Of a stretch of 64,000 bases of DNA, positions 3,801-63,077 are shown one piece after another. Numbering within the stretch: position 1 is the stretch's first letter; each line of letters starts with the position of its first letter. Under the pieces are notes generated by a model. That model was not told the DNA's origin. It worked only from the letters and a program-made list of their open reading frames with translations, and ran no database searches. The DNA comes from Selaginella moellendorffii (Eukaryota; Plantae; Lycopodiophyta): the NCBI RefSeq assembly GCF_000143415.4, contig NW_003314402.1, forward strand, positions 135,804-199,803, read 5' to 3'. The translations under genes were made by a program, and so were the position numbers.

Positions 3801-4741
3801 CCATTTCCCCGGGGCTTGTGGATCCAGGAGGGCATTCACCACCTCATCCAGCTGCTCCCCATGGCGGCCAAACATGTCGTTGGCCTCGGGAACACCATGC
3901 CGTACATAGTTTACGAGACCTCTGTCTTGTGGACAACTCCGTACGGAAAAGCTGGTGCTCGGCTGTATCCCTCTCAACTCTCGCTCGTACCTTTCAATGT
4001 GCGGGAGGAGATCGTTCTCGCAAGTGCGTACCAGCTCCGAAATCGCGCCAGATCGCTTCTCCCTGCGCGACAGATCCATCTTTTAGCTCCATTGCTTCAA
4101 ACATGAATTCGAATAAGCCTTACTGTGATCCAAGCAGCGCTTGCGCCTTCTTAGTCCATTCAGTCAGTTCAGTCAGCCACGCCTCAGCCTCACCAGAGTA
4201 GCGGAAATCTGGATTCCTGTGCTTGGGAGCATTAAACTTGTCAAGCGTGGCCTGGATTCTGGATGCCCTCTTCTTTAGCTCCTCAATGTGGACATTCAGC
4301 TCATGCTCGTGACCTTGGATCTGCGACAGGAGATCGCCGTAGGCACTTAAGGACTTCGCGATCTCGTTACTCCGCTTGTACCTATAGGAAGTGGAGAAGT
4401 TCAACCAGCTGCCTGCCATTTCTACACACACACACACAAAAGATAAAATGCTACTGTACCGACCGCTTTATGGGGCTCCAGATCCTGTTGTGGCGTGATC
4501 CCAAGAGTGCTTGTGCCGTGGTGTTCCATTTCCTGACACGCTCCAAGCATTCCTCGGCCGCTTGAGAGAACGTGAAGCCAGGATTCTGCTGCTTGTGATC
4601 ACTGAAAGCGTTGATCTTGTGCCGGATGTGGGGCGCCTTGTTCTCCAGCGTTTCAATGTTGGCATTGCAGTCCCATATCTTCTTAGCAGGGCGCAGAGCC
4701 AAGCCACACAAGGCGCTTGCCAAGGAGCCCACAACCTCCAT
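888..4741 (-). CDS. NLR copy 1: tandem-CC-NB-ARC-LRR, 3 coding exons (4741-4464, 4381-4124, 4062-888), ~1236 aa, with 501-bp LRR duplication
   Basis: NB-ARC motifs: P-loop GMGGCGKTT, kinase-2 LLILDDVW, RNBS-B SRVLVTTR, GLPL (CEGLPLAL), RNBS-D CFLYVAAFPED, VHD (MHD position); LxxLxL repeats follow. GT-AG introns 4463-4382 (82 nt, ends cttcctatAG) and 4123-4063 (61 nt, GTaagg...cgcAG) are both phase 2 and join the exons in frame. Confidence 0.9.
1420..2420 (-). repeat. Tandem 501-bp (167-aa) LRR duplication in NLR copy 1
   Basis: Anchors atgggaacgatcc at 1430/1931 and ccactcaaatc at 1870/2371 give a period of 501. Confidence 0.95.
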
Positions 4742-4834
4742 GCCTGTAGACCTACAAGTCAAGGTCGTTTCCCTCTTGCAATGCCAGCTGTGGCTCTCTA
4801 TCTCTCTCTCTCTCTCATACACAAAATAGCTGGG

Positions 4835-5596
4835 AGGCCTTGACAGATTTTCGATGGCCTGCACAAACCAAACCAGTTCTCGTGGAACATCTTGCTGCGA
4901 ACGTATGTTGCAAATCGTAGGATGCCCCCGATTCCATGGGAACAGGTTTATGGATGAGGAAAAGAAGCTGTTTGATTCGATCGCTTCTCGTGAAATATTA
5001 TGATCAAGGGGCTCGACTTCGCAAAGAGGAAAGATGCTATCTCTTCTGGCAGCACCTGCTCGAATAAGGCATTTGGAAGAAGCAAAAACTCTCCTTTTAA
5101 TGCGATGCCTCGGAGGAAAAACGTGCTTGCAAGAAACACAATGATTGTCAACCATACGCTCTCAAAGAGCCTATTTGACCAGAGCCATACAGGAATCTTG
5201 TGTCTTGGGCAGGCATGCTACAACGCATCTTTAAATGAAGGTGGAAGTTGCAACTTCGATGATGCCGAACTAAAACTCTCTCTCATAACTCTGGCTCTCT
5301 CTCTCTCTCTCTCTCTCAATAATAACGTTTTGAGCAGCTGTTCTTCCATCCAGGCATTTGCTGTATTCGTTCATCTTTGCATAAACCCCAGCGACCTTCA
5401 CAACATAAGAGCTAGAGTGATTCACGGTGAGCACTGCAACGATTGCTACCTCGCCAATCTCATCGTCCAAAAGTATGGGGGGCTGTGGGGTACTCGACAG
5501 ATGTTCACTGGAACATCTTTCTGGGAAAAATCGGTTGAGCGGAGATCCAAGAGCGATGTGGTCGCATGGAACTTGATCCTCGCAGCGTATGCCTAA
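4835..5596 (+). pseudogene. PLS-class PPR gene relics
   Basis: QIFDGLHKPNQFSWNILLRTYVAN (~4845-4915); YLANLIVQKYG and DVVAWNLILAAYA (5445-5596). Confidence 0.65.
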
Positions 5597-5963: not shown

Positions 5964-8528
5964 ATCGATGCGGCTTGCCGGCGGAGAAGGCTCAGAAATC
6001 CCCATTACCTTGTGCAGCTCCAGAACGCCGATCAAGGCCGCCCCCAGCGCCGTCTCCTTGACAACGAAAGCTTTCGGGCCGTGCGGGATGTCCTTGGCAG
6101 CGATGTCTGCGACATGGATCTCGTCCACGCGCTACACTTGGCGAGGAACGATTTGCAAGTGGCCGTGCTCGACACTCCGGGTTTTAGAAATAGGAAGAGG
6201 CTCCAGGCGAGGAACGATTTGCAAGTGGCCGCCCACATTGTGCTCGACACTCCTGCAAAAAACTCCTGCAAAAGCTGAGGCTTCTAGGACAGCAAAAATT
6301 TCCGAGGTGAGCAATGATAGTGGAGCAGAGGATTTATATGATTCGGGAGTAGAAAGTGGAGCAATCGATGGTGGGGAAGAAGAGGTAAACAAGATTATGA
6401 CTGGAGGAGGAAACGATGCCGAGGTGGAAAGAACAACAGTGGTGGAGAGCTCCATTGAGACTGTCAGGAAACATGGCGAGGCTGTTTCTAGCGCCTTAGC
6501 TGGACTTTCAATCAGAGGTAGTGCCTTGACCCACGGTAATCCCGTTAAGATGGAAGCTGGCTGTGATTCCGTGAAAGCTGAAGCTTCGGTTTCGATCGCA
6601 GCTGGATGTGATCCTACGAAAGTAGATGGCTTGGTGAAGATGGAAGCTGGTTGTTTTAGATGCAGAGAGGTGGTGGCTTCTCCAAGAGACTGAAGTTGCC
6701 GGGTACTCGACGTCCAGGGGATGCCGGATTCGAGTTGGCGAGTTCGTGTCCTTCAATTTTCCCAAGCCTGAAGCCGAAAGTAAGAAGAAGTTCTTTGAGC
6801 ACAAGAAGGTTCGGCCGAAAGCAAGCTCCGACATTGTAAGGTTCTTGACAAAAGCTTCAGGAGAGGTACGTTTCACTTGACTTGTTTCTTCGTTTTAATT
6901 CTAACCATTTGCTCACAGAGAGGACGGCTTCCAGCCGACTGGTGATACCTTTGGGAAGTGCAAAATGGCACCAGAGGCTCTTTCTCTTATGAGCAGCATA
7001 GTTCTCCATTTGAGGTAGAGTTTTCTGTGTTTACCAGAGACGTTACGTATATGATGTGCTTGCAGAGTTTAAAGCCTTACGAGGAGGGGGATGAGCGCGG
7101 ATTGAAGCTTCTGCAAGCTATCTTGAAGCCGTTAATGCTTCGAAGAAAAAAAGATTCAACTGATAAAGAAGAAAGGTAAGCATTTTTTTCTTTGCACCGT
7201 GCCTTGTCTTGTATTCACTCACAAGTTGGATTCACAGACCAATTCCTGTTCTCCAACCGGCTCAATGTGAAGTTATTGAATGCAAACTATCTGAGCCTGA
7301 ATGCCCTTTACCACAGATCTAAGGCATGAAGAACTTCTCTTTCTTTTATTTTCTCGTTTTTTCTGAACACGTTTTTGCTTTTGTGATCAGGTAAAATTCG
7401 ATCAGTTCGTTGAACAAGGTAAAGTTCTCCATAACTATGCCTCGATCCTCGAACTGCTACTTCGATTACGGCAAGCTTGTGATCATCCTTTTCTTGTTCT
7501 GAGGTAGAAAATGCATCCTCTTATGTCTGAAGTTCCTGACGTTTTCTTCGTCACGCAGCCGTGGCGATACTGAAGACTTTGCGGACCTGGGAAAGCTGGC
7601 TAGACGTTTCTTGGACAAGAATTCCTCCCAGGTGCCTTCGACGGCTATGTCAAAGAGGTGGTGGATGATATTCGTAAAGGAGAAAGTGCTGAGTGCCCAA
7701 TTTGTTTGGAGATGCACGCAGTTCTTACACCATGCGCTCATTGAATGTGAGCGCCGGAGGTCCCTGTCCAATATCCGAGGTAACATATTGTTTTTTTTCT
7801 CGAGCTCTTTTCCATATCCATAGCTATCATGCAGGCGTTCCTGTACGAAATAGGAACTCATAACTGTACCAACAAGTAATCGGTTTCGAATAAATGTCGA
7901 GGAGCAGTGGAAGGAGTCGTCCAAAGTCGAGGCTCTGCTGCACCACCTCCAGACGTTAAGTGAGGCCGGGTCGAAAAGCGTTGTTTTTAGTCAGTGGACA
8001 GCGTTTCTCGACTTGTTAGAGATACCATTGAAAAGGTACGAGCGTCTTTCCTTTTGGTGCTTTCTCTTTGTTTGTGTTTCTAACAATGCACTGCCAGGAA
8101 GAACTTCTGTTTCGTCCGCTTGGACGGAACACTATCGCAGCGTCAGCGAGAACAAGTGCTCAAAAACTTCAGCAATATTCCAGCCGTGGCCGTAAGCTTT
8201 TCGTGTTGCTTACCTCCAAGAAACCACTCTATTTTGTGGACAGGTCATGCTCATGCTTTTCTCATGGTATGCGCTATAGTTATCTTTTTTAGCCATCTTC
8301 CGAGTCGAGCATCGGTCAGACGAAGAACGTATCGATCAAGCGATTCATCGTCAAAGTAAGCGCCAGTTGAAACTCTCTTTGACGTTTCTCATGTCTCTAG
8401 AGCAGGACTCGGTGGAGGAGAGAATGCAACAGGTCCAAGCGAGGAAGCAGCGATTGATCGCGGGGGCTCTCACAGACGAAGAGGTGCGAAGCGCTCGAAT
8501 CGAGGAGCTCAAAATGCTATTTAGATGA
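5964..8528 (+). pseudogene. RAD5: RAD5-like (HIRAN-SNF2-RING-HELICc) pseudogene A
   Basis: N-terminus ESFRAVRDVLGSDVCDMDLVHALHLARND; HIRAN WWLLQETEVAGYSTSRG...DIVRF; KPYEEGDERGLKLLQAILKPLMLRR; [36 protein letters not shown]; KSVVFSQWTAFLDLLEIPL; C-terminus DSVEERMQQVQARKQRLIAGALTDEEVRSARIEELKMLFR*. Introns are retained, there are many frameshifts, and ATPase motifs I-III are absent. Confidence 0.88.
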
Positions 8529-12213: not shown

Positions 12214-15200
12214 TTAGGCGCCGAAACTTATCTGGAGATCCGGCCGTTCCACAAGCCAAGGTGGAACTTTCGTACCTTTTGGGCACCATAGGAATTTGAG
12301 CCTTGGAAATAAGTGATTGTCTGAACTCAATTGGGGCCACACTACATCATCATGATCAGAGAGCACAAGTTCCTCCAATCCTGGAAGGGATGCAATGGAT
12401 GATGGAATATCTTCGATCCCAGACAAGCGCACACGTCTTAAAAGAGTCATTTGGTCTGTTGGCTCAAAGAAATCATTGGGGAGCTTACAGCGCAAAGATA
12501 ATGTGAACCGTTTCACCTTCAGCTGTGATCTCTCGGTTGGCATCAAGAGTCTCCTCATGTAACTTTTTATATCAACATCCAGTGTATCAAGGTCTTTGGG
12601 GAGTTGTGTCACAAAGAGAGGCAAATGCTCCCATGCATTATCAGGAGCCAGATTGAATGTTAAACTTTTCAGGTTTGGAAGACTTGCTGCCAAATCGTCC
12701 TTGAACTCGGACTGTGCAATGTGCAGATTTCGAAGCTCCAGACGTTCGAGGCATGGGAACGATCCATCCAGACTGAAGAACTGGATACCAATGCAGTCTA
12801 GGAGAAGTTCTCGTAGCCGTTGAAAGCCCTTTACCCAACACAAGTCTTTCATTGTCTCATTCTTTCTGATCCATAAAATTTGTAACTGTGACCATTCAAG
12901 GCTTTCGGCATTGTTTTCACCATCTCGTACCCCGTCAATGGAAAAGCTCCAAAGCTGTTTGGAATTCTTAAACATTCGCTTCCAGTCAAGTTTGATAGTC
13001 GATTGCACGCTAATGTCACATCGTCTTAGATTGACAAGTTGCCACAGGCTGGTGAAATCACCAAAGTCCATGCTCTTTGCACGCCACACCAGTGTCTCAA
13101 TGCCCTCTAGTGCACCAAGGCTGTGAGGTATTTTTATTGTTGCACCATAGAGGTTTAGCTTTAAATGTCTTAGCTTGTGTAAGATTGAAATTCCACTCAA
13201 ATCCACAGCTAACTCCTCAAAGGAATCAAGCTCCAGCTCTTCCAAGTTGAATAATTGAGGCAGTAATGCAAAGTTGAATTTTCTGATGTCATTGCATTTC
13301 AAAACCTTCAGTGATGTCAAGCTGAAGAGCGCATCTGGTAATATTGTCACACTTGAATATAGAAGGTCAAGCACTTGAAGGTTTCTCAGCTTGGATATGC
13401 TCTCTGCAATAAAACGGACCAAATTAACGCATCTATTCAAGCTCAATACCTTGACGTTTTGGATGTGATCTATATCCACACCAGAAATTACATTACATCC
13501 ATCGAGAAGCAAGACATCTCGCACATGAATGTCAGACAAAAGGCTGCTTGTAACCTTCTTTCCAATGAATGAAACTTTAGAAAATGTTGGAGAAATCCCA
13601 GGTGGACAATCATAGCCAAACAGGCATCCCTTCTCATGCTCTTCCTGGGGTGGGTACTTCCCTTTCAAGATTCTTATGCACAGCTTGCGTACCATATCGT
13701 GCACAGTTACATACTTATACCATGGAGAACCAGTTGTCTTCACTAGGCATCTTCGTTTCAGTTCACTAACAATCTGCAGAGGCGGGAGTTCTGACCCAAC
13801 CGCTATCCAACATTTTCTCAGATCATCAAACTGGATTCGCTCATCTTCTGGAAACGCAGCCACATAGAGAAAGCATTCTTGCAGCTTTTCATCCTTATTA
13901 AAGCGTCCCAGCTCGTCATAGCTAAACTTCAAGGGCCGGAACATCCGCTTCTCAATGTCCCCGTCATTCAACAAATGCATCTTCTGATAGCGTTCTTCCC
14001 ACACCTGTGGCCCCTTATTCCTGTAGACAGCCATGGCACTGCCAATCACTTCAAGAGCTAAAGGGAGCCCCTCACATTTGCTAGCTATTCTCTCGGCAAC
14101 TTTCACAATGTCCGGATCACTAGGTAGTGAATCACGAAAGGCAAACTTCCAAAACATCTTTTCGCTCTCGGCCTTTGATAGCATACACACACGAAATGTT
14201 TTTGCACCCAGCATGCTCAAAATGCCTTTCTTTCTGGTTGTTACCAGCACCCGGCTGTAAGAGGACGGCCCTGCTGTAAAATCCAGTCCCTTGGTCAAGC
14301 TCATTTCCCACACATCATCCAGTATCAACAAGACATGGTTGCCACGAGCAACATTTTGTGCCATCTGTTGCACATGCTCAATGGTGCCTGCATTTTGGGC
14401 CCTCTCCTTCATGTCGCCCCATTCAAGAGCGTTGAGGAGCTGGGCCCTGAGATCATCCTCCGATGCATCTTTCTTGACAGTAATCCACACAATGTTGTCA
14501 TGGAAATGCTGCCGGACCCTCTGGTCATTGTGCACGAAGCTTGCAAGGGTGGTCTTGCCACACCCTCCCATTCCCAGGAGTCCAAACCATTTCCCCGGGG
14601 CTTGTGGATCCAGGAGGGCATTCACCACCTCATCCACCTGCTCCCCATGGCGGCCAAACATGTCGTTGGCCTCGGGAACACCACGCGGTACATAGTTTAC
14701 GAGACCTCTGTCTTGTGGACAACTCCGTACGGAAAAGCTGGTGCTCGACTGTATCACTCTCAACTCTTCTCGCTCGTACCTTTCAATCTGCGGGAGGAGA
14801 TCGTCCTCGCAAGTGCGTACCAGCTCCAAAATCGCGCCAGATCGCTTCTCCCTGCGCGATAGATCCATCTTTTAGCTTCATTGCTTCAAACATGAATTCG
14901 AATAAGCCTTACTGTGATCCAAGCAGCGCTTGCGCCTTCTCAGTCCATTCAGTCAGTTCAGTCAGCCACGCCTCAGCCTCACCAGAGTAGCGGAAATCTG
15001 GATTCCTGTGCTTGGGAGCATTAAACTTGTCAAGCGTGGCCTGGATTCTGGATGCCCTCTTCTTTAGCTCCTGCCATTTCTACACACAGCTGCCTGCCAT
15101 TTCTACACACACACACACACAAAAGATAAAATGCTACTGTACCGACCGCTTTATGGGGCTCCAGATCCTGTTGTGGCGTGATCGCAAGAGTGCTTGTGCC

Positions 15201-15419
15201 GTGGTGTTCCATTTCCTGACACGCTCCAAGCATTTCTCGGCCGCTTCAGAGAACATAAAGCCAGGTCCATTTCGCTCCTTGTGGCGATCGAAAGCGTTGA
15301 TCTTGGCCTGGATGTGGTGCGCCTTGTTCTCCAGCGTTTCAATGTTGGCATTGCAGTCTCTTAGCAGGGCCCAGAGCCAAGCCACACAAGACGCCTGTCA
15401 AGGAGCCCACAACCTCCAT
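12214..15419 (-). pseudogene. NLR copy 2: NB-ARC-LRR exon open (12214-14851) but N-terminal exons disrupted
   Basis: 884-aa ORF with all NB-ARC motifs. Exon 1 has an 8-nt deletion near 15358 (gcagtc^tcttagc vs gcagtcccatatcttcttagc). A ~130-nt deletion near 15072 removes the intron-1 acceptor and the 5' half of exon 2. Confidence 0.75.
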
Positions 15420-16698: not shown

Positions 16699-18755
16699 CG
16701 ACACTCCGGGTTTTAGAAATAGGAAGAGGCTCCAGCTTAAGGCTCCGACCCCAGCGTTGGTAAATCGTCGACGACAGGGAGTTCTAGATCTACGGTGACA
16801 ACATAGGCCCCTGCGGCAAAATGTTCCATCGGCAGTGGATCGCCAAAAACTCCTGCAAAAGCTGAGGCTTCTAGGACAGCAAAACTTGCCGAGGTGAGCA
16901 ATGATAGTGGAGCAGAGGATTCATATGATTCGGGAGTAGAAAGTGGAGCAATCGATGGTGGAGAAGAAGAGGTAAACAAGATCATGACTGGAGGAGGAAA
17001 CAATGCCGAGGTGGAAAGAACAACAGTGGTGGAGAGCTCCATTGAGACTGTCAGGAAACATGGCGAGGCTGTTTCTAGCGCCTTAGCTGGACTTTCAATC
17101 AGAGGTAGTGCCTTGACCCACGGTAATCCCGTTAAGATGGAAGATGGTTGTGGTTCCGTGAAAGCTGAAGCTTCGGCTTCGATCGCAGCTGGATGTGATC
17201 CTATGAAAGTAGATGGGTTGGTGAAGATGGAAGCTGGTTTTGAGTCTGCAAGAGTCGAAGCTCCGGTTGGCTCAGTGAAGATGGAACCTGGTAATGATCC
17301 TGTGAAAGTTGAAACTCCATTCGGGGGTGGTAAAGCTGCCCATTTGTCTGAAGCGCAGTTGGTTCCAATAGAAAATGACACGGCTAAAGCTGCAGAGAAG
17401 CAACCGGTTGTTTTAGATGCAGAGAGGTGGTGGCTTCTCCAAGAGACTGAAGTTGCCGGGTACTCGACGTCCAGGGGATGCCGGATTCGTGTTGGCGAGT
17501 TCGTGTCCTTCAATTTTCCCAAGCCTGAAGCCGAAAGTAAGAAGAAGTTCTTTGAGCACAAGAAGGTTCGGCCGAAAGCGAGCTCCGACATTGTAAGGTT
17601 CTTGACAAAAGCTTCAGGAGAGGTACGTTTCACTTGACTTGTTTCTTCGTTTTAATTCTAACCATTTGCTCACAGAGAGGACGGCTTCCAGCCGACTGGT
17701 GATACCTTTGGGAAGTGCAAAATGGCACCAGAGGCTCTTTCTCTTATGAACAGCATAGTTCTCCATTTTTCTGTGTTTACCAGAGACGTTACGTATATGA
17801 TGTGCTTGCAGAGTTTATATCAACAAGTCAGAAGCCTTACGAAGAGGGGGATGAGCGCGGATTGAAGCTTCTGCAAGCTATCTTGAAGCCGTTAATGCTT
17901 CGAAGAACAAAAGATTCAACTGATAAAGAAGGAAGGTAAGCATTTTTTCCTTTGCACCGTGCCTTGTCTTGTATTCACTCACAAGTTGGATTCACAGACC
18001 AATCTTGTTCTCCAACCGGCTCAATATGAAGTTATTGTATCCATATCCATAGCTATCATGCAGGCGTTCCTGTACGAAATAGGAACTCATAACTGTACCA
18101 ACAAGTAATCGGTTTCGAATAAATGTCGAGGAGCAGTGGAAGGAGTCGTCCAAAGTCGAGGCTCTGCTGCACCACCTCCAGACGTTAAGTGAGGCCGAGT
18201 CGAAAAGCGTTGTTTTTAGTCAGTGGACAGCGTTTCTCGACTTGTTAGAGATACCATTGAAAAGGTACGAGCGTCTTTCCTTTTGGTGCTTTCTCTTTGT
18301 TTGTGTTTCTAACAATGCACTGCCAGGACGAACTTCTGTTTCGTCCGCTTGGACGGAACACACTCGCAGCGTCAGCGAGAACAAGTGCTCAAAAACTTCA
18401 GCAATATTCCAGCCGTGGCCGTAAGCTTTTTGTGTTGCTTACCTCCAAGAAACCACTCTATTTTGTGGACAGGTCATGCTCATGCTTTTCATGGTATGTG
18501 CTATAGTTTTCTTTTTTAGCCATCTTCCGAGTCGAGCATCGGTCAGACGAAGAACGTATCGATCAAGCGATTCATCGTCAAAGTAAGTGCCACTTGAAAC
18601 TCTCTTTGACGTTTCTCATGTCTCTAGAGCAGGACTCGGTGGAGGAGAGAATGCAACAGGTCCAAGCGAGGAAGCAGCGATTGATCGCGGGGGCTCTCAC
18701 AGACGAAGAGGTGCGAAGCGCTCGAATCGAGGAGCTCAAAATGCTATTTAGATGA
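16699..18755 (+). pseudogene. RAD5: RAD5-like pseudogene B
   Basis: Paralog of A; HIRAN exon open (16894-17637); RING region deleted. Confidence 0.85.
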
Positions 18756-19676: not shown

Positions 19677-22600
19677 TTAATCCCAGAATGTTATCTGGAG
19701 ATCCGGCCGCTCCTCAAGCCATGGTGGAACTTTCGTAGCTTTTTGGCAGCGTAGGACTTTGAGCCTGGGAAATAAGCCAAGGCCGTGATTGTCTGAACTC
19801 AATTGGGGCCACACTACATCATCATGACCAGAGAGCACAAGTTCCTCCAATCCTGGAAGGGATGCAATGGATGATGGAATATTTTCGATCCTATTCAAGG
19901 TTACATCTCTTAGAGCAGTCATTTGGTATGTTGGCTCAAAGAAATCATTGGGGAGCTGCCTCATACAGCCCGTCCGCAAAGATAATGCGAACCCTTTCAC
20001 CTTCAGCTGTGATCTCTCGGTTGGCATCAAGAGTCTCCTCATGTAACCTTCTACTCTCAGTCCATCAAGGTCTTTGGGGAGTTGTGTCACAAAGAGAGGC
20101 AAATGCTCCCATGTATTATCAGGAGCCAGATAGAATCTTAACCACTTCAGGTTTGGAAGACTTGCTGCCAAATCATCCTTGAACTTCGACTGTGCAATGC
20201 GCAGATTTCGAAGCTCCAGATGTTTGAGGCATGGGAACGATCCATCCAGACTGAAGAACTGGATACCACTGCGGTCTAGTTGAAGTTCTCGTAGCCGTTG
20301 AAAGACCTTTAGCCAAGACAGGTCTTTCATTGTCTCATTGTTTATGATCGTTAAAAGTTGTAGCTGTGGCCATTCAAGGCTTTCGGCATTGTTTTCACCG
20401 TCTTGTACCCCGTCAATGGAAAAGCTCCAAAGCTGTTTGGAATTCTTAAACATTCGCTTCCAGTCAAGTTTGATAGTCGATTGCACACTAATGTCACATC
20501 GTCTTAGATTGACAAGTTGCCACAGGTCGGTGAAATCACCAAAGTCCATGCTCTTTGCCCGCAACTCCAGTGTCTCCATGGCCACTAGTGCACCAAGGCT
20601 GTGAGGTATTTTTATTGTTGCACCATAGAGGTCTAGCTTTAAATGTCTTAGCTTGTGTAGGCTTGAAATTCCACTCAAATTCACAGCTAACTCCTTACCG
20701 GAATGAAGCTCCAGCTCTTCCAAGTTGAATAATTGGGGCAGTAATGCAAAGTTGAATTTTGTGGTATTATCGCATTTCAAAACCTTCAGTGATGTCAAGC
20801 TGAAGAGCGCATCTGGTAATATTGTCACACTTGAATATAGAAGGTCAAGCACTTGAAGGTTTCTCAGCTTGGATATGCTCTCTGGAATAAAACGGACCTG
20901 ATCAGAGCAGTGAAGCAAGCTCAATACCTTGACATTTTGGATGTGATCTATAATAAGACTGACATCCACACCAGAAATTCCATAACATCCATCGAGAAGC
21001 AAGACATCTCGCACATGAATGTCAGACAAAAAGCTGCTTGTAACCTTCTTTCTGATGAATGAAACTTTAGAAAATGTTGGAGAAATCCCAGGTGGACAAT
21101 CATAGCCAAACAGGCATCCCTTCTCGTGCTCTTCCTGGGGTGGGTACTTCCCTTTCAAGATTCTTATGCACAGCTTGCGTACCATATCGTGCACAGTTAC
21201 ATACTTACCCCATCGATCATCAGTTGTCTTCACTAGGCATCTTCGTTCCAGTTCACTAACAATCTGCAGAGGCGAGAGTTCTGACCCAACCGCTATCAAA
21301 CATTTTCTCAGATCATCAAAGTCGATTGGCCAATCTTCTGGAAACGCAGCCACATAGAGAAAGCACTCTTGCAGCTTTTCATCCTTATTAGACAGCTCGT
21401 CATAGCTAAACTTCAAGGGCTGGAACATCCGCTTCTCAATGTCCCCGTCATCCAACAAATGCATCTTCTGATAGCGTTCTTCCCACACCTGCGGCCTGTC
21501 ATGCCTGTAGTCAGCCATGGCACTGCCAATCACTTCAAGAGCTAAAGGGAGCCCCTCACATTTGCTAGCTATTCTCTCGGCAACTTTCACAATGTCCGGA
21601 TCACTAGGTAGTGAATCATAAAAGGCAAACTTCCAAAACATCTTTTTGCTCTCGTCCTCTGATAGCTCATGCACAGGAAGTTCCTTTGCACCCAGCATGC
21701 TCAAAATGCCTTTCTTTCTGCTTGTTACCAGCACCCGGCTGTAAGAGGACGGCCCTGCTGTAAAATCCAGTCCCTTGGCCCAGCTCATTTCCCACACATC
21801 ATCCAGTATCAGCAAGACACGAATTCCACGAGCAACATTTTGTGCCAAGTGCTGCACATGCTCAAGGGTGCCTGCATTTTGGGCCCTCTCTCTCATGCCG
21901 CCCCAGTCAAGAGCGTTGAGGAGCTGGGCCCTGAGATCATCCTCCGATGCATCTTTCTTGACAGTGATCCATACAATGTTGTCATGGAAATGCTGCCGGA
22001 CCCTCTGGTCATTGTTCACGAATTTTGCAAGGGTGGTCTTGCCACACCCTCCCATTCCCAGGAGTCCAAACCATTTCCCCGGGGCTTGTGGATCCAGGAG
22101 GGCATTCACCACCTCATCCACCTGCTCCCCATGGCGGCCAAACATGTCGCTGGGCTCGGGAACACCATGCCGTACATAGTTTACGAGACCTCTGTCTTGT
22201 GGACAACTCCGTACGGAAAAGCTGGTGCTCCGCTGTATCACTCTCAACTCTTCTCGCTCGTACCTTTCAATGTGCGGGAGGAGATCGTTCTCGCAAGTGC
22301 GTACCAGCTCCGAAATCGTGCCAGATCGCTTCTCCCTGCGCGAAAGATCCATCTTTTAGCTTCATTGCTTCAAACATGAATTCGAATAAGCCTTACTGTG
22401 ATCCAAGCAGCGCTTGCGCCTTCTCAGTCCATTCAGTCAGTTCAGTCAGCCACGCCTCAGCCTCACCAGAGTAGCGGAAATCTGGATTCCTGTGCTTGGG
22501 AGCATTAAACTTGTCAAGCGTGGGCTGGGTTCTGGATGCCCTCTTCTGTAGGTCCTCAATGTGGACATTCAGCTCATGCTCGTGACCTTGGATGTGCGAC

Positions 22601-23016
22601 AGGAGATCGTCGTAGGCACTTAAGGACTTCGCGATGTCGTTACTCCGCTTGTACCTATAGGAAGTGGAGAAGTTCAACCAGCTGCCTGCCATTTCTACAC
22701 ACACACACACACAAAAGATAAAATGCTACTGTACCCACCGCTTTATGGGGCTCCAGATCCTGTTGTGGCGTGATCCCAAGAGTGCTTGTGCCGTGGTGTT
22801 CCATTTCCTGACACGCTCCAAGCATTTCTCGGCCGCTTCAGAGAACGTGAAGCCAGGATTCTGCTGCTTGTGAACACTGAAAGCTTCGATCTTGTCCTGG
22901 ATGTGGGGCGCCTTGTTCTCCAGCGTGTCAATGTTGGCATTGCAGTCCCATATCTTCTTAGCAGGGCCCAGAGCCAAGCCACACAAGACGCCTGTCAAGG
23001 AGCCCACAACCTCCAT
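19677..23016 (-). CDS. NLR copy 3: tandem-CC-NB-ARC-LRR, exons 23016-22739, 22654-22397, 22335-19677, ~1064 aa, apparently intact
   Basis: Same motifs and splice sites as copy 1; all three exon frames are open. Confidence 0.9.
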
Positions 23017-32344: not shown

Positions 32345-35300
32345 CTAGCGCCCGTAGAATGTTATCTGGAGATCTGGCCGCTCCTCAAGCCATGGTGGAA
32401 CTTTCGTACCTTTTAGGCAGCGTAGGACTTTGAGCCTGGGAAATAAGCCAAGGCCGTGATCGTCTGAACTCAATTGGGGCCACACTACATCATCATGACC
32501 AGAGAGCTCAAGTTCCTCCAATCCTGGAAGGGATGCAATGGATGATGGAATATTTTCGATCCCTATCAAGTGCGCCCATCTTAAAAGAGTCATCTGGTCT
32601 GTTGGCTCAAAGAAATCATTGGGGATACAGCCCTTCCACAAAAATAATGTGACGCATTTCACCTTCAGCTGTGATCTCTCGGTTGGCATCAAGAGTCTCC
32701 TCATGTAACCTTCTACTCTCAGTTCATCAAGGTCTTTGGGGTGTTGTGTCACAAAGAGAGGCAAATGCTCCCATGTATTATCAGGAGCCAGCTTGAATGT
32801 TAAAAGCTGCAGGTTTGGAAGACTTGCTGCCAAATCGTCCTTGAACTCCGACTGTGCAATGTGTAGATTTTCAAGGCCCAGAACTTCAAGGCATGGGAAC
32901 GATCCATCTAAACTGAAGAACTGGATACCACTGTCTAGGCGAAGTTCTCGTAGCCGCTGAAAGCCCTTTAACCAGGACAGGTCTTTCATTGTCTCATTGT
33001 TCCTGATGGTTAACAATTGTAGCTGTGGCCATTCAAGGCTTTCGGCATTGTTTTCACCGTCTTCAACCCCGTCAATCGCAAAGCCCTCAAGCTGTTTGGA
33101 ATTCTTAAACATTCGCTTCCAGTCAAGTTTGATAGTCGATTTCACCCAAATCTCACATCGTTTCAGATTGACAAGTTGCCACGGGCCGGTGAAATCGCCA
33201 AAGTCCATGCTCTTTGCACGCAACACCAGTGTCTCAATGTCCACTAGTGCACCAAGGCTGTGAGGTATTTTTATTGTTGCACCATAGTAGAGCTCTAGCT
33301 TTAAATGTCTTAGCTTGTGTAGGCTTGAAATTCCACTCAAATCCACAGCTAACTCCTCAAAGGAATGAAGCTTCAGCTCTTCCAAGTCGAATAATTGGGG
33401 CAGTAATGCAAAGTTGAGATTTCTGGTAGCCTTGCATTTCAAAACCTTCAGTGATGTCAAGCTGAAGAGCGCATCTGGCAATTGAGGCACATCATCGTAG
33501 GATGGAAAGTGAAGCACTTGAAGGTTTCTCAGCTTGGATATGCTCTCTGGAATAGAACGGGCCAAATTATAGCATCCATTCAAGCTCAATACCTTGACAT
33601 TTTGGATGTGATCTATATCCAAACCAGAAATTTCATGAGGTCCATCGAGAAGCAAGACATCTCGCACATGAATGTCAGACAAAAGGCTGCTTGTAACCTT
33701 CTTTCCAATGAATGAAACTTTAGAAAATGTTGGAGAAATCCCAGGTGGACAATCATAGCCAAACAGGCATCCCTTCTCGTGCTCTTCCTGGGGTGGGTAC
33801 TTCCCTTTCATGATTCTTATGCACAGCTTGCGTACCATATCGTGCACAGTTACATACTTACCCCATCGATCATCAGTTGTCTTCACTAGGCATCTTCGTT
33901 CCAGTTCACTAACAATCTGCAGAGGCGAGAGTTCTGACCCAACCGCTATCCAACATTTTCTCAGATCATCAAACTCGATTCGCACATCTTCTGGAAACGC
34001 AGCCACATAGAGAAAGCACTCTTGCAGCTTTTCATCCTTATTAGACAGCTCGTCATAGCTAAACTTCAAGCGCTGGAACATCTGCTTCTCAATGTCCCCG
34101 TCATTCAACAAATGCATCTTCTGATAGCGTTCTTCCCACACCTGCGGCCCGTCATGCCTGTAGTCAGCCATGGCACTGCCAATCACTTCAAGAGCTAAAG
34201 GGAGCCCCTCACATTTGCTAGCTATTCTCTCGGCAACTTTCACAATGTCCGGATCACTAGGTAGTGAATCATAAAAGGCAAACTTCCAAAACATCTTTTT
34301 GCTCTCGTCCTCTGATAGCTCATGCACAGGAAGTTCCTTTGCACCCAGCATGCTCAAAATGTCTTCCTTTCTGGTTGTTACCAGCACCCGGCTGTAAGAG
34401 GACGGCCCTGCTATAAAATCCAGTCCCTTGGCCAAGCTCATCTCCCACACATCATCCAGTATCAGCAAGACACAAATTCCACGAGCAACATTTTGTGCCA
34501 AGTGCTGCACATGCTCAAGGGTGCCTGCATTTTGGGCCCTCTCTCTCATGCCGCCCCAGTCAAGAGCGTTGAGGAGCTGGGCCCTGAGATCATCCTCCGA
34601 TGCATCTTTCTTGACAGTGATCCATACAATGTTGTCATGGAAATGCTGCCGGACCCTCTGGTCATTGTTCACGAATCTTGCAAGGGTGGTCTTGCCACAC
34701 CCTCCCATTCCCAGGAGTCCAAACCATTTCCCCGGGGCTTGTGGATCCAGGAGGGCATTCACCACCTCATCCACCTGCTCCCCATGGCGGCCAAACATGT
34801 CGTTGGCCTCGGGAACACCACGCCGTACATACTTTACGAGACCTCTGTCTTGTGGACAACTCCGTACGGAAAAGCTGGTGCTCGGCTGTATCACTCTCAA
34901 CTCTTCTCGCTCGTACCTTTCAATCTGCGGGAGGAGATCGTTCTCGCAAGTGCGTACCAGCTCCGAAATCGCGCCAGATCGCTTCTCCCTGCGCGACAGA
35001 TCCATCTTTTAGCTCCATTGCTTCAAACATGAATTCGAATAAGCCTTACTGTGATCCAAGCAGCGCTTGCGCCTTCTTAGTCCATTCAGTCAGTTCAGTC
35101 AGCCACGCCTCAGCCTCACCAGAGTAGCGGAAATCTGGATTCCTGTGCTTGGGAGCATTAAACTTGTCAAGCGTGGCCTGGATTCTGGATGCCCTCTTCT
35201 TTAGCTCCTCAAGTGGACATTCAGCTCAAGCTCGTGACCCTTGATCTGCGACAGGAGATCGCCGTAGGCACTTAAGGACTTCGCGATCTCGTTACTCCGC

Positions 35301-35671
35301 TTGTACCTATAGGAAGTGGAGAAGTTCAACCAGCTGCCTGCCATTTCTACACACACACACACACAAAAGATAAAATGCTACTGTACCGACCGCTTTATGG
35401 GGCTCCAGATCCTGTTGTTGCGTGATCCCAAGAGTGCTTGTGCCGTGGTGTTCCATTTCCTGACACGCTCCAAGCATTCCTCGGCCGCTTCAGAGAACAT
35501 AAAGCCAGGTCCATTTCGCTCCTTGAGATCACCAAAAGCGTCGATCTTGTCCTGGATGTGGGGCGCCTTGTTCTCCAGCGTGTCAATGTTGGCATTGCAG
35601 TCCCATATCTTCTTAGCAGGGCCCAGAGCCAAGCCACACAAGGCGCTTGCCAAGGAGCCCACAACCTCCAT
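32345..35671 (-). pseudogene. NLR copy 4: NB-ARC-LRR exon open, 1-nt deletion in exon 2 (~35212)
   Basis: 886-aa ORF with NB-ARC and LRR. Exon 2 reads ctcctcaagtggac versus ctcctcaatgtggac in copies 1 and 6, and the exon-2 ORF is missing from the ORF track. Could be a sequencing error. Confidence 0.65.
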
Positions 35672-44689: not shown

Positions 44690-46980
44690 ATGGGGCTCGA
44701 CACTCCGGGTTTTAGAAATAGGAAGAGGCTCCAGCTTAAGGCTCCGACGAGCAGTGCCAAGGCGAGGAGCCCCAGCCAGCGTTGGTAAATCGTGGACGAC
44801 AGGGAGCTCTAGATGTACGGTGACAACAAAGGTCCCTGCGGCAAAATGTTCCATCGGCTGTGGATCGCCAAAAACTCCCGCAAAAGCTGAGGCTTCTAGG
44901 ACAGCAAAAATTCCCGAGGTGATTGTTGATAGTGGAGCAGAGGATTTAGATGATTCGGGAGTAGAAAGTGGAGCAATCGATGGTGGGGAAGAAGAGGTAA
45001 ACAAGATTAAGACTGGAGGAGGAAACGATGCCGAGGTGGAAAGAACAACAGTGGTCGAGAGCTCCATTGAGACTGTCTGGAAACATGGCGAGGCTGTTTC
45101 TAGCGCCTTAGCTGGACTTTCAATCAGAGGTAGTGCCTTGACCCACGGTAATCCCGTTAAGATGGAAGCTGGTTGTGGTTCCGTGAAAGCTGAAGCTTCG
45201 GTTTCGATCGCAGCTGGATGTGATCCTATGAAAGTAGATGGCTTGGTGAAGATGGAAGCTGGTTTTGAGTCTGCAAGAGTCGAAGCTCCGGTTGGCTCGC
45301 TGAAGATGGAACCTGGTTATGATACTGTGAAAGTTGAAACTCCATTCGGGGGTGGTACAGCTGCCCATTTGTCTGAAGCGAAGGTGGTTCCAATAGAAAA
45401 TGACACGGCTAAAGCTGCAGAGAAGCAACTGGTTGTTTTAGATGCAGAGAGGTGGTGGCTTCTCCAAGAGACTGAAGTTGCCGGGTACTCGACGTCCAGG
45501 GGATGCTGGATTCGTGTTGGCGAGTTCGTGGCCTTCAATTTTCCCAAGCCTGAAGCCGAAAGTAAGAAGAAGTTCTTTAAGCACAAGGGGTTCGGCCGAA
45601 AGCGAGCTCCGACATTGTAAGGTTCTTGACAAAAGCTTCAGGAGAGGTACGTTTCACTTGACTTGTTTCTTCGTTTTACTTCTAACCATTTGCTCACAGA
45701 TAGGACGGCTTCCAGCCGACTGGTCCAAGTGTTTGATACCTTTGGGAAGTGCAAAATGGCACCAGAGGCTCTTTCTCTTATGAGCAGCATAGTTCTCCAT
45801 TTGAGGTAGAGTTTCTGTGTTAACCAGAGACGTTACGTATATGATGTGCTTGCAGAGTTTATATCAACAAGTCAGAAGCCTTACGAGGAGGGGGTTGAGC
45901 GCGGATTGAAGCTTCTGCAAGCTATCTTGAAGCCGTTAATGCTTCGAAGAACAAAACAAAAGATTCACAAGTTGGATTCACAGACCAATTCTTGTTCTCC
46001 AACCGGCTCAATGTCAGGTTATTGAATGCAAACTATCTGAGCCTGAACGTGATTTTTATGATGCCCTTTACCACAGATCTAAGGCATGCTTTCGGATTGA
46101 ACTTCTTTTCTCTTTTTTCTGAACACGTTTTTGCGTTTGTGATCAGGTAAAATTCGATCAGTTCGTTGGACAAGGTAAAGTTCTCCATAACTATGCGTCG
46201 ATCCTCGAACTGCTACTTCGATTACGGCAAGCTTGTGATCATCCTTTTGTTGTTCTGAGGTAGAACATGCATCCTCTTATGTCTGAAGTTCCTGACGTTT
46301 TCTTCGTCACGCAGCCGCGGCGATACTGAAGACTTTGCGGACCTTGGAAAGCTGGCTAGACGTTTCTTGGACCCAAAGTCCAGGCTCTGCTGCACCACCT
46401 CCAGACGTTAAGTGAGGCCGGGTCGAAAAGCGTTGTTTTTAGTCAGTGGACAGCGTTTCTCGACTTGTTAGAGATACCATTGAAAAGGTACGAGCGTCTT
46501 TCCTTTTGGCGCTTTCTCTTTGTTTGTGTTTCTAACAATGCACTGCCAGGACGAACTTCTGTTTCGTCCGCTTGGACGGAACACTATCGCAGCGCTCAAA
46601 AACTTCAGCAATATTCCAGCCGTGGCTGTAAGCTTTTTGTATTGCTTACCTCCAAGAAACCACTCTATTTTGTGGACAGGTCATGCTCATGCTTTTCTCA
46701 TGGTACGCGCTATAGTTTTCTTTTTTAGCCATCTTCGGAGTCGAGAATGTGGACGATCGAGCATCGGTCAGACGAAGAACGTATCGATCAAGCGATTCAT
46801 CGTCAAAGTAAGCGCGAGTTGAAACTCTCTTTGACGTTTCTCATGTCTCTAGAGCAGGACTCGGTGGAGGAGAGAATGCAACAGGTCCAAGCGAGGAAGC
46901 AGCGATTGATCGCGAGGGCTCTCACAGACGAAGAGGTGCGAAGCGCTCGAATCGAGGAGGTCAAAATGCTATTTAGATGA
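44690..46980 (+). pseudogene. RAD5: RAD5-like pseudogene E
   Basis: Paralog of A; ends ARIEEVKMLFR*. Confidence 0.85.
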
Positions 46981-53136: not shown

Positions 53137-54822
53137 AATGTATATGGTTTTACTTTTGAACTAGGATAGTTTATATGTTTTAATATAGTTAACACTCTGG
53201 AACTTGATTTATAATATTAAGGACATCAAGAATTATTTTAAAATTGGACTAAAACTTGATTTTCCTTATGGATTTTCAACTACATATAAAAGATGTACAT
53301 TCATGTAATTTATTCATATGACAATATTCTTTTGATAAGAGCATAGGTTGTGCTGTTTAACAAACATATGATGTTTTTGACTGGAACTTTTATGAAAAAA
53401 TTCCCACACTTCAATAAGAAAATAAACAAATTTATATTGTTTTTATTTGCTGCAGAATGTCCTTTTTTAATTCTATATGAATTGGGATTGTTGGTTACAA
53501 CTTCCATACATATAACATATAAATGTTCTATTGCAAACACCTTTACCACATATTTAATTCTTCCTTGGATCCTCATAATATAATCAATTGCCACTTCTAT
53601 AAAATTGTCTTTATTGTTACTTCTATAGTAGTGTCCTTATTGTGGGCACCTTCTGGAAATTTGTGATAAACTACATCCAAAACTAAATAAAAGTAATTCC
53701 AAACATTGTTATAGTATGGCACAATACAAACTTCTCTAACTAGAGCATCCATTAGTAAGATGCAAATATGATTAAACTGAATATTCCCTAAAACTAGAAT
53801 ATGAGAACCTATGTGGTGATATTTCATTAGAGTTCTTCTTAGTTCATCTACATAGTAACTGAGAAAAAATTATTAGCTTCTACCAAAGAAATAGACAGAT
53901 AGACAATTTCTCACTAGTAGTATTTAACACAAATAAAGATTTCAATTGCACCCCTAATCCCAATTAAGAATATCTTTATAATTTGAGTAAAATATATATC
54001 ACTTGGAAAACCATATAGTTATAAGCATGAAATATAATATGATTATTACAAACCTACCACCATAGTTGTGTTTTGCTTTTGCACTATGATTTTAGCATGT
54101 ATTGCCACAATTTTTAATTCTTCCTCTTTCATGACATTTTCTTCAACCAAATTATCATTAGGTAAACTATTCATCACTCATTCCAACATCACTAATGACA
54201 AATATAATGTTCTCTCACAAATCATATCCAAACCCATTTGCTAGATTATATGGTTCTGACTTTCCCCCCAAATCCACTCTATTATTTGTCACCGTGCTAA
54301 CTTATGCATTTTTAGTGAGAGTAAGTGTTTGCCTATGCTTATAGAAAGTAGATTTGGTGAAAAAATAACCTTTTGCTGCCCTTGTTGCAACATATGATAG
54401 ACAACAATAATTTTTCTTTCCTTTTTGATTTAGTTTGGTATGAACCATTGAGATGTGTCATTTTCTAGCTAATCTAGTGATTCTAATCCCCAGACAAATA
54501 TTACAATCAACATTACAAGGCAAACACATTCTTGCAAAACTTGTGAAACTTAAAAATACACGATTATCACATATTTTTTAGTGTTTTTAATGTTGTCAGC
54601 CTTGTGGTTTTTTGCTGCTTTCTTTCAAAAACATAATATTGTTATAAATATTTTTTTTGAGGTATTTTTCAAGTCCTTATTTAGCAAATTCATAATGGAG
54701 GTAGAGATAAATTGCCCAATCCGTAATGCTTTTTGGGATTGGGCCTATAAGTAACATTTGATAAACATAGAACATAGGAAGGTTAAGGCTTTTTACTTGC
54801 ATTTATTGATAGAAGTTTTTTT
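53137..54822. repeat. AT-rich block, truncated on the right side
   Basis: Nearly identical to 23395-25080. Confidence 0.6.
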
Positions 54823-54990
54823 CTGCTGCTTGTGATCACTGAAAGCGTTGATCTTGGCCTGGATGTGGTGCGCCTTGTTCTCCAGCGTTTCAATGTTGGC
54901 ATTGCAGTCCCATATCTTCTTAGCAGGGCCCAGAGCCAAGCCACACAAGGCGCTTGCCAAGACGCTTGTCAAGGAGCCCACAACCTCCAT
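54823..54990 (-). pseudogene. Orphan NLR exon-1 fragment (MEVVGSLTSVLASALCGLALGPAKKIWDCNANIETLENK...)
   Basis: Near-identical to exon 1 of the NLR copies; truncated at HKQQ and fused to the AT-rich block. Confidence 0.9.
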
Positions 54991-55757
54991 GGCTGTAGAC
55001 CTACAAGTAAAGGTTGTCTCCCTCCCAGAAAGAAGCACAATATTAACTCTTGACCTTGTAGATCGGAATTCTTCACTTTTTTCACAGCTGTGACTCACTC
55101 ACTCTAAGAGATTCACAGTGAGCACCGCAACGATCGCTACATCGCTCGCAAGAAACACCTCTATTTGTACAAACAGACAAACGTGGAGCACGTAAAGTAC
55201 TTGTGTCTTTGGCCTAAAACGGGCATCTTAAACGCCATAGCCAGAAAATGGACGGCGGAGATCTTTTGAGCAAGAACCCTAAGCCCCAATTTCTCTTGGC
55301 GAGGCGGCGAGAGAGCGATGGCGCAGAGAGATGCGACACGCCCGAGAAGAACATCGTCTTTTCTCTTGTACGGCGTTGATCCAGGCGAACGGGAATAGAG
55401 GGCTCCTCTGCCGATCTTTGATGGGATCCGGGCGATCTTGTCACCGACGTCTTGAAAGATCTTAGATTCTATCCGCAATCGCCCAGTCAATGCGATCCTG
55501 GCGATGGGTGCTCCATATCATTCTATTCCCGCCCGGACGTGATCTCCAGGATTTGCGAAGAAGAAGCTCGTCGATCAGATGCGCGATGCTGGCGCGCAAT
55601 TGATTGGGGCTTCCCGCTACATTTTCCCGCGCTATCGTCTCTACTTCTCCATTCTAGGGTTCTTTCTTGGAGGCGACGTAGGTTTTCTATTGCCCGCGTG
55701 GTCGAGGAGACGGCGCTGGGGGGCGGCCTTGATCGGCGTTCTGGAGCTACACAGGTA

Positions 55758-58269
55758 ATGGGGCTCGAAATAGGAAGAGGCTCCAGCTTAAGGCTCCGAC
55801 GAGCAGTGCCAAGGCGAGGAGCCCCAGCCAGCGTTACGGTGACAACAAAGGCCCCTGGGGCAAAATGTTCCATCGGCAGTGGATCGCCAAAAACTCCTGC
55901 AAAAGCTGAGGCTTCTAGGACAGCAAAAATTGCCGAGGTGAGCAATGATAGTGGAGCAGAGGATTTATATGATTCGGGAGTAGAAAGTGGAGCAATCGAT
56001 GGTGGGGAAGAAGAGGTAAACAAGATTATGACTGGAGGAGGAAACGATGCCGAGGTGGAAAGAACAACAGTGGTGGAGAGCTCCATTGAGACTGTCAGGA
56101 AACATGGCGAGGCTGTTTCTAGCGCCTTAGCTGGACTTTCAATCAGAGGTAGTGCCTTGACCCACGGTAATCCCGTTAAGATGAAAGCTGGTTGTGGTTC
56201 CGTGAAAGCTGAAGCTTCGGTTTCGATCGCAGCTGGATGTGATCCTATGAAAGTAGATGGATTGGTGAAAATGGAAGCTGGTTTTGAGTCTGCAAGAGTC
56301 GAAGCTCTGGTTGGCTCGGTGAAGATGGACCCTCGTTATGATACTGTGAAACTTGAAACTCCATTCGGGGGTTGTTTTAGATGTTGAGAGGTGGTGGCTT
56401 CTCCAAGAGACTGAAGTTGCCGGGTACTCGACGTCCAGGGGATGCCGGATTCGTGTTGGCGAGTTCATTTCCTTCAGTTTTCCCAAGCCTGAAGCCGAAA
56501 GTAAGAAGAATTTCTTTGAGCACAAGAAGGTTCGGCCGAAAGTGAGCTCCGATATTGTAAGGTTCTTGACAAAAGCTTCAGGAGAGGTACGTTTCACTTG
56601 ACTTGTTTCTTCGTTTTACTTCTAACCATTTGCTCACAGATAGAACGGCTTCCAGCCGACTGCGCCAAGTGTTTGATACCTTTGGGAAGTGCAAAATGGC
56701 ACCAGAGGCTCTTTCTCTTATGAGCAGCATAGTTCTCCATTTGAGGTAGAGTTTTCTGTGTTTACCAGAGACGTTACGTATATGATGTGCTTGCAGAGTT
56801 TATATCAACAAGTCAGAAGCCTTACGAGGAGGGGGTTGAGCGCGGATTGAAGCTTCTGCAAGCTATCTTGAAGCCGGTAATGCTTCGAAGAACAAAAGAT
56901 TCAACTGATAAAGAAGGAAGGTAAGCATTTTTTTCTTTGCACCGTGCCTTGTCTTGTATTCACTCACAAGTTGGATAATTCTTGTTCTCCGACCGGCTCA
57001 ATGTGAAGTTATTGAATGCAAACTATCTGAGCCTGAACGTGATTTTTATGATGCCCTTTACCACAGATCTAAGGCATGAAGAACTTCTCTTTCTTTTATT
57101 TTCTCTTTTTTGTGAACACGTTTTTGCGTTTGTGATCAGGTAAAATTCGATCAGTTCGTTGAACAAGGTAAAGTTCTCCATAACTATGCCTCGATCCTCG
57201 AACTGCTACTTCGATTACGGCAAAGCTTGTGATCATCCTTTTCTTGTTCTGAGGTAGAAAATGCATCCTCTTATGTCTGAAGTTCCTGACGTTTTCTTCG
57301 TCACGCAGCCGTGGCGATACTGAAGACTTTGCGGACCTGGGAAAGCTGGCTAGACGTTTCTTGGACAAGAATTCCTCCCAGGTGCCTTCGACGGCGTATG
57401 TCAAAGAGGTGGTGGATGATATTCGTAAAGGAGAAAGTGCTGAGTGCCCAATTTGTTTGGAGATGCACGCAGTTCTTACACCATGCGCTCATCGAATGTG
57501 CCGTGAGTGCCTATTGAATAGCTGGCGTACTAGCGCCGGAGGTCCCTGTCCAATATCCGAGGTAACATATTGTTTTATTTCTCGAGCTCTTTTCCATATC
57601 CATAGCTATCATGCAGGCGTTCCTGTACGAAATAGGAACTCATAACTGTACCAAGAAGTAATCCAAAGTCGTCCAAAGTCGAGGCTCTGCTGCACCACCT
57701 CCAGACGTTAAGTGAGGCCGGGTCGAAAAGCGTTGATTTTAGTCAGTGGACAGCGTTTCTCGACTTGTTAGAGATACCATTGAAAAGGTACGAGCGTCTT
57801 TCCTTTTGTGCTTTCTCTTTGTTTGTGTTTCTAACAATGCACTGCCAGGAAGAACTTCTGTTTCGTCCGCTTGGACGGAACACTATCGCAGCGTCAGCGA
57901 GAACAAGTGCTCAAAAACTTGAGCAATATTCCAGCCGTGGCCGTAAGCTTTTTGTGTTGCTTACCTCCAAGAAACCACTCTATTTTGTGGACAGGTCATG
58001 CTCATGCCTTTCTCATGGTACGCGCTATAGTTTTCTTTTTTAGCCATCTTCCGAGTCGAGAATGTGGACGATCGAGCATCGGTCAGACGAAGAACGTATC
58101 GATCAAGCGATTCATCGTCAAAGTAAGCGCCACTTGAAACTCTCTTTGACGTTTCTCATGTCTCTAAAGCAGGATCGAAGCGAGGAAGCAGCGATTGATC
58201 GCGGGGGCTCTCACAGACGAAGAGGTGCGAAGCGCTCGAATCGAGGTGCTCAAAATGCTATTTAGATGA
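55758..58269 (+). pseudogene. RAD5: RAD5-like pseudogene F
   Basis: Paralog of A; RING CPICLEMHAVLTPCAHRMCRECLLNSW in ORF 57361-57645. Confidence 0.85.
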
Positions 58270-62200: not shown

Positions 62201-63077
62201 TGTCGTTGGCCTCGGGAACACCACGCCGTACATAGTTTACGAGACCTCTGTCTTGTGGACAACTCCGTACGGAAAAGCTGGTGCTCGGCTGTATCACTCT
62301 CAACTCTTCTCGCTCGTACCTTTCAATGTGCGGGAGGAGATCGTTCTCGCAAGTGCGTACCAGCTCCAAAATCGCGCCAGATCGCTTCTCCCTGCGCGAC
62401 AGATCCATCTTTTAGCTCCATTGCTTCAAACATGAATTCGAATAAGCCTTACTGTGATCCAAGCAGCGCTTGCGCCTTCTCAGTCCATTCAGTCAGTTCA
62501 GTCAGCCACGCCTCAGCCTCACCAGAGTAGCGGAAATCTGGATTCCTGTGCTTGGGAGCATTAAACTTGTCAAGCGTGGCCTGGATTCTGGATGCCCTCT
62601 TCTTTAGCTCCTCAATGTGGACATTCAGCTCATGCTCGTGACCCTGGATCTGCGACAGGAGATCGCCGTAGGCACTTAAGGACTTCGCGATCTCGTTACT
62701 CCGCTTGTACCTATAGGAAGTGGAGAAGTTCAACCAGCTGCCTGCCATTTGTACACACACACACACAAAAGATAAAATGCTACTGTACCCACCGCTTTAT
62801 GGGGCTCCAGATCCTGTTGTCGCGTGATCCCAAGAGTGCTTGTGCCTTGGTGTTCCATTTCCTGACACGCTCCAAGCATTCCTCGGCCGCTTCAGAGAAC
62901 ATAAAGCCAGGTCCATTTCGCTCCTTGTGGCGACCGAAAGCGTTGATCTTGTCCCGGATGTGGGGCGCCGGATTTGTTCTCCAGCGTTTCAATGTTGGCA
63001 TTGCAGTCCCATACCTTCTTAGCAGGGCCCAGAGCCAAGCCACACAAGGCGCTTGCCAAGGAGCCCACAACCTCCAT
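59233..63077 (-). pseudogene. NLR copy 6: frameshifted, with 501-bp LRR duplication
   Basis: Split into 615-aa and 462-aa ORFs by a 13-nt deletion near 60640 (ctcaatgtc^aggctg). A 4-nt insertion (ggat) in exon 1 near 62970 is a second frameshift. Confidence 0.85.
59770..60760 (-). repeat. Tandem 501-bp LRR duplication in NLR copy 6
   Basis: atgggaacgatcc at 59787 and 60288; same ELESCKELAVAMDLSG junction as copy 1. Confidence 0.9.

Follow-up and report, generated by a model that had tools for sequence, protein, structure and literature searches.

Two CC segments ahead of an NB-ARC domain have been described before. In Marchantia, Mp3g09180 and Mp3g09210 have been predicted to be tandem CC-CC-NLRs, and in Mp3g09210 only the internal CC triggered cell death (PMC11218826); the NLRtracker 'CCNL' class, with examples in sweetpotato, carries two CC annotations before the NB-LRR (10.1101/2025.01.13.632774). 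Two-CC NLRs as such are already known, though the layout in Marchantia appears to be different, and the doubling that the first-pass annotation presented as a departure from a normally single domain has these precedents. Other systems that bear on the locus discussed here are the Cbl-N/MAEPL NLRs of non-flowering plants (Chia et al. 2024, PMC11218826), the EDVID-less CC(G10) NLRs RPS2, RPS5 and WAI3, which have a single CC and whose clade has been reported as absent from Selaginella (PMC7756659), and the EDVID-type CNLs ZAR1, Sr35 and NRC.

The window analyzed here, 64,000 nucleotides of Selaginella moellendorffii (contig NW_003314402.1, positions 135,804 to 199,803), is a tandem NLR cluster on the minus strand, with its nearest proteins among the RefSeq entries of the same species at 83-92% identity. 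The gene that starts at 4741 is organized as follows:

4741-4464 (278 nt), minus strand: exon 1, with the start codon, helix 1 (residues 1-23), repeat 1 helices 2-3 and the IWSP loop
4463-4382 (82 nt), minus strand: intron 1, GT-AG, phase 2, with joints in contigs
4381-4124 (258 nt), minus strand: exon 2, repeat 1 helix 4 joined to repeat 2 helices 2-3
4123-4063 (61 nt), minus strand: intron 2, GT-AG, phase 2, with joints in contigs
4062-888, minus strand: exon 3, repeat 2 helix 4, linker, NB-ARC and LRR
4673..4741, minus strand: helix 1, amphipathic and hydrophobic, occurring once; a candidate membrane-inserting helix, judging from the CCs of ZAR1, NRC and the MAEPL group
4297..4672, minus strand: CC repeat 1 (residues about 24-121), a three-helix bundle across intron 1, by AF2 and fold match
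3975..4296, minus strand: CC repeat 2 (residues 122-208), a three-helix bundle across intron 2, lacking helix 1

What appears to be new is this layout, two three-helix bundles behind a single helix 1, together with a single-CC sister that documents its origin; no paper on the Selaginella duplication of helices 2-4 was found in a literature search of partial coverage. The Cbl-N/MAEPL NLRs provide the best CC profile and the nearest NB-ARC neighbors and share the absence of EDVID, but the Selaginella family has no MAEPL, forms a long-branched clade of its own and has helices 2-4 doubled. The Marchantia CC-CC-NLRs are alike in having two CC-labelled segments ahead of the NB-ARC; their internal CC, however, has its own MAEPL-type helix and, in the parts of that publication considered here, the external segment looks by eye, unaligned, unlike a copy of the internal one, whereas the Selaginella repeats are true duplicates with helix 1 on the outer repeat only. 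The 'CCNL' label, for its part, is an annotation string with origin and mechanism undemonstrated, while the Selaginella origin can be traced and a single-CC sister survives.

Joined, exons 1-3 give a 1236-aa open frame encoding a CC-NB-ARC-LRR protein, and the first-pass proposal of a gene model spliced at two phase-2 introns has held up. Contigs from four studies, whose runs were called RNA by a tool's guess, show the 61-nt joint of intron 2 in every run; that of intron 1 (82 nt) is seen in two, and the other two have loose ends that fit it. Both joints have CT..AC ends in the contigs, which indicates spliced RNA. At the diagnostic letters (4693, 3970, 3636 and a 3-nt insert at 3978) the contigs carry mostly or wholly those of a paralogue or allele, so the support for splicing is at the level of the family and not provably of the window copy. 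The N-terminus can hardly be called hidden, as had been suggested: RefSeq already has the same spliced form in a dozen proteins, and P0009 holds exon 1 of the window copy, identical letter for letter. The M-E start is common to every family member, including the single-CC protein P0018. A start at MDLSRR, raised earlier as an alternative, is out, since its in-frame ATG sits within intron 2, the one spliced in all runs. An upstream extension, as in RefSeq P0009 and P0013, is also unlikely; the open stretch upstream is 36-140 codons long, varies by copy and in several copies has no Met. Those extended models stem from the 140 open codons preceding the window gene (4742-5161), which are not conserved among the copies.

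Two further joints were seen. A minor alternative acceptor (4463-4217, a 247-nt skip) occurs in one contig (X14, depth 5.6); it stays in frame, drops 55 codons that make up repeat 1 helix 4 and repeat 2 helix 2, and is probably splicing noise. A joint from 5480 to 4853, with 14 extra letters, is found in all four runs; it runs backward and so is not an intron of the window gene, and it may come from a circular form or from a paralogue or allele whose 5' region has been rearranged.

Seven copies within the window, six of them full-length and one a 5' fragment, have the N-terminal region in common at 90-97% DNA identity. Three of the full-length copies are intact (starts 4741, 23016 and 52758) and three are broken. 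Apart from the gene at 4741, they are:

19677..23016, minus strand: intact paralogue of 1064 aa; N-terminus doubled, both introns present, first 200 aa the same as in RefSeq P0011
49416..52758, minus strand: intact paralogue, 1065 aa, with the doubled N-terminus laid out as in the 4741 copy
32345..35671, minus strand: broken paralogue, 1-nt loss in exon 2 and a stop after 128 aa
59233..63077, minus strand: broken paralogue, frameshifts in exon 1 and the LRR
12214..15419, minus strand: broken paralogue, exon-1 frameshift and a deletion over the intron-1 acceptor
54821..54990, minus strand: 5' fragment of a further copy, exon 1 in part only

Within the LRR of the window gene, a 167-residue segment has recently been duplicated, with 139 residues identical (residues 740-1073, window about 2380-1400), which accounts for the extra length of this copy; the one at 63077 seems to have the same duplication. 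A second sequence has been co-duplicated between the NLR copies (5968-6693, 16894-17637, 44754-45620 and 55452-56597). It resembles the N-terminal stretch of RAD5-like helicases, but had no match in Pfam.

The tandem homology of the two N-terminal repeats, as first proposed, is borne out by 34 identities in 86 positions and an alignment score of 129, where 5000 shuffles gave a mean of 26.5 and a maximum of 59. The repeats are alike as DNA too (score 148 against a shuffle maximum of 85), and their profile-profile probability is 99.7%. In a repeat screen of about 100 NLR matches, a clear N-terminal repeat was found in this family only (z 17-36); P0121 is a spurious repeat protein. Helix 1 (hydrophobicity 0.37, moment 0.31) is indeed confined to repeat 1; repeat 2 consists of helices 2-4 and also lacks the 10-residue loop HNRIWSPIKR that precedes the intron in repeat 1, giving helix 1 plus two three-helix bundles rather than two complete CC domains. 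An intron at the same position and phase in both repeats had been claimed as well, and this stands in part: the phase is 2 in both and the acceptor sides coincide (before Y/E-KRS), whereas in repeat 2 the missing loop shifts the donor 10 codons upstream.

The origin of the doubling is documented by P0018, a 946-aa family member on another scaffold with a single CC. Its P-loop lies at 180, against 271 in the doubled form, and its one intron, of 63 nt and phase 2, interrupts V-R^Y where intron 1 does. (Its gene, L001 10001-12904, stands alone amid housekeeping genes; the doubled members lie in tandem clusters.) The NB-ARC tree places P0018 as the sister of the whole doubled group (SH-aLRT 97), and this placement, taken with its single CC and intron, shows that helices 2-4 were duplicated once within the gene, as a derived event, and took the intron along. 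A distant subfamily represented by P0014 has both introns at the same positions. The dS values, which are small, noisy estimates, are 1.5-2.5 (near saturation) to P0018, 0.84-0.89 between repeats 1 and 2, and 0.24-0.53 between subfamilies, an order that places the P0018 split first, then the duplication and then the split of the subfamilies. The duplicated unit extends from just past helix 1 through the end of helix 4, intron included, with the junction at 4297/4296, inside exon 2; exon 2 is therefore chimeric, and what was duplicated was a segment of the gene whose breakpoints (near residues 24 and 121) fall within exons. The duplication put forward in the first-pass annotation is thus retained, but not as the duplication of a whole exon. 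The sequences of introns 1 and 2 did not align above chance, so that position and phase alone count as intron evidence. These comparisons show an ancestor whose single CC consisted of helix 1 followed by one three-helix bundle and whose CC region had one phase-2 intron; from it a single tandem duplication of about 90 codons produced the order helix 1, bundle 1, bundle 2, NB-ARC and LRR; repeat 2 never possessed helix 1, and the 10-residue loop has been lost there.

When 1.84 billion representative proteins were searched by profile, this family, a weak match to P0122 (E 5e-4) and one spurious repeat were returned and nothing else, and a metagenome scan gave no match; the N-terminal domain is a CC that is divergent and apparently restricted to one species. 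P0122 (L002 166-1023) comes from transcriptome-like contigs and has 285 aa in two CC-like halves that repeat each other weakly (z 7.9), with no NB-ARC; it may be a separate case of CC doubling in another plant.

The rest of the protein is that of a plant NLR, with an NB-ARC (about 3854-3129; Pfam E 3.5e-40) in which the P-loop GMGGCGKT, Walker B LLILDDVW, GLPLA and VHD are all intact, followed by a C-terminal LRR (LRR_14, E 1.5e-25). In the N-terminal region, Pfam detected nothing above a CC cut-off in any exon or repeat. Rx_N reached 16-19 bits against a cut-off of 27.7, and RPW8 (PF05659) was absent from repeats 1 and 2 and from P0018, the controls P0023 and P0033 passing its cut-off. There is no EDVID motif, and no MAEPL motif in helix 1, where the family scores at most about 3 bits with a home-built motif HMM that gives 36-53 bits for the sequences it was trained on and 15 for a single moss protein kept out of the training. 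The hhalign ranking of CC profiles places the non-seed Cbl-N/RPW8-related group first (94.9%, E 4e-8), ahead of G10 (83%, E 9e-6) and Rx_N (19%); the Atlas feature score of P0018 against Rx_N clusters is 0.93. The NB-ARC lies on a long branch, sister to and outside the sampled non-seed Cbl-N clade (SH-aLRT 84-90), and also falls outside G10 in the best trees, although a forced grouping with G10 was not rejected (AU p 0.146). Judged from sequence, the closest CC type would be the non-seed Cbl-N/RPW8-related group, with G10 less likely. The resemblance to RPS2/RPS5-clade (non-EDVID) or RPW8-type CCs suggested earlier has to be adjusted: the Cbl-N/RPW8-related profile outranks that of G10, and Pfam finds no RPW8.

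AF2 models and profiles were made from RefSeq proteins as stand-ins for the window gene, with shallow alignments of 13-17 sequences in the case of AF2. The model of the doubled N-terminus has helices at 2-52, 60-81, 90-121, 123-148, 156-177 and 183-209 (pLDDT 66, pTM 0.46, with helix 1 below 50 in pLDDT), while that of repeat 2 with its preceding helix has them in the same order at 2-59, 67-88 and 94-120 (pLDDT 82, pTM 0.65). From 90 to 148 the helix is near-continuous, repeat 1 helix 4 running on as repeat 2 helix 2, and one long helix is thus modelled as linking the bundles end to end. Among 48,161 chains, repeat 1 had near the top of its matches the wheat G10 resistosome CC of WAI3 (Z 9.4, rmsd 2.4, 96 residues) and the ZAR1 resistosome (Z 9.2), and repeat 2 had the ZAR1 resistosome joint first (Z 10.3, rmsd 5.9), though Z values of 9-10 are in the generic helical-bundle range and count only alongside the sequence evidence. 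In Foldseek the ZAR1 resistosome stood in the first row for repeat 2 at a non-significant E of 0.39, and neither model had a match below E 0.001; the Atlas shape search and the PDB sequence search gave none. A shared fold had been anticipated, and both repeats are modelled as three-helix bundles with resistosome CCs among their top matches; both are CC-like, but repeat 2 is not a full four-helix CC. By hhalign, AF2 and fold search, the family has a helical-bundle CC homologous to known NLR CCs, and is a CC-NLR in this broad sense; for repeat 2 alone, the CC assignment leans mainly on its homology to repeat 1. With the G10 NLRs it shares the lack of EDVID, the second-ranked profile and the fit of repeat 1 on the WAI3 CC, and differs in having more than one bundle and, in the best tree, in its NB-ARC placement; with ZAR1, Sr35 and NRC it shares a CC bundle onto which both repeats can be modelled, but it has no EDVID, an Rx_N score below the Pfam cut-off and a weak profile match.

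Selection on the two repeats has been compared by dN/dS, which is 0.43-0.47 for repeat 2, 0.40-0.45 for the NB-ARC and 0.64-0.66 for repeat 1. By these estimates, repeat 2 is under purifying selection similar to that on the NB-ARC, which argues both against decay and against a diversifying decoy. The first-pass annotation had offered a decoy role for repeat 2, and integrated decoys are common in NLRs; as a sensing surface for effectors aimed at CC domains, repeat 2, which has no helix 1 and would make no pore by itself, would be exposed. It shows no surplus of amino-acid change, however, and is nearly invariant across close paralogues while the LRR varies, and we consider such a role very improbable. 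It also seems rather unlikely that repeat 2 is a tolerated passenger: the product of a one-time event that cost little, given a CC directed away from the LRR, and that was multiplied with the expansion of the clade, selection maintaining no more than its fold. The single origin, the occurrence in one species among all the representative proteins searched, the parts lost from repeat 2 and a dN/dS near 0.45, which is moderate, would all fit; yet the frame is kept in all members examined, on four scaffolds, the constraint on repeat 2 equals that on the NB-ARC, and the ancestral residues have been partitioned between the repeats. Of these residues, 26 are kept in both repeats, 20 in repeat 1 only (beside helix 1, in helix 3 and in the IWxP loop) and 12 in repeat 2 only (in the helix 2-3 loop and the C-terminal YERE by the linker, at the NB-ARC-facing end).

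The reading we prefer, and hold to be about evenly balanced between right and wrong, is that repeat 1 serves as the pore-forming executioner and repeat 2 as a structural extender. On activation, the NB-ARC would oligomerize; repeat 1, as sole bearer of helix 1, would build a funnel or cation channel in the membrane, in the manner of other CC resistosomes; and repeat 2 would be the conserved extender that keeps the NB-ARC-side contacts and places the funnel farther from the NB-ARC ring. In the WAI3 resistosome, the EDVID-less CC is directed outward from the LRR (10.1101/2025.08.26.672026), and a CC pointing that way would leave room for a second bundle in line. This reading is weakened by a helix 1 without MAEPL, by the shallow AF2 alignments and by the Marchantia case, where it is the internal CC that kills cells (PMC11218826), though that CC is equipped with a helix 1.

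Many contigs keep intron 1 (X1, 112 against 274 spliced; X2, 52; X10, 102), and an in-frame ATG at 4419, within it, is the start of RefSeq isoforms P0002 and P0004, which have no helix 1. Both observations, like the purifying selection on repeat 2, would suit a brake, in which repeat 2 packs on repeat 1 or helix 1 at rest, or the helix-1-less isoforms are dominant-negative, raising the activation threshold. Against this, the AF2 models show no fold-back of repeat 2, the retained intron could be pre-mRNA or DNA, and a transcript that begins with exon 1 and retains intron 1 runs from the normal start to a stop after 96 aa, yielding no helix-1-less protein; a brake seems unlikely. Pore geometry may be altered, as the first-pass annotation suggested. 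A further reading is a two-tier resistosome in which a ring of helix-1-less CCs beneath the pore ring would alter funnel length, stoichiometry or ion flux, intron 1 retention switching between pore-competent and inert subunits. This is speculative and rather unlikely; if true, it would be a natural experiment in which the pore function of an EDVID-less CC is separated from its scaffold function.

The importance of these findings is limited by the single species, the already public gene models and the earlier mentions of two-CC NLRs, and the family may be seen as a modest twist on a known receptor type. The analysis does describe the N-terminus, unrecognized by Pfam, of a sizeable lycophyte NLR clade. 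Structural work on how EDVID-less CCs assemble and reach the membrane is only recent (WAI3), and P0018 and its doubled sister clade form a natural pair for testing CC length and surfaces against resistosome geometry and activity.
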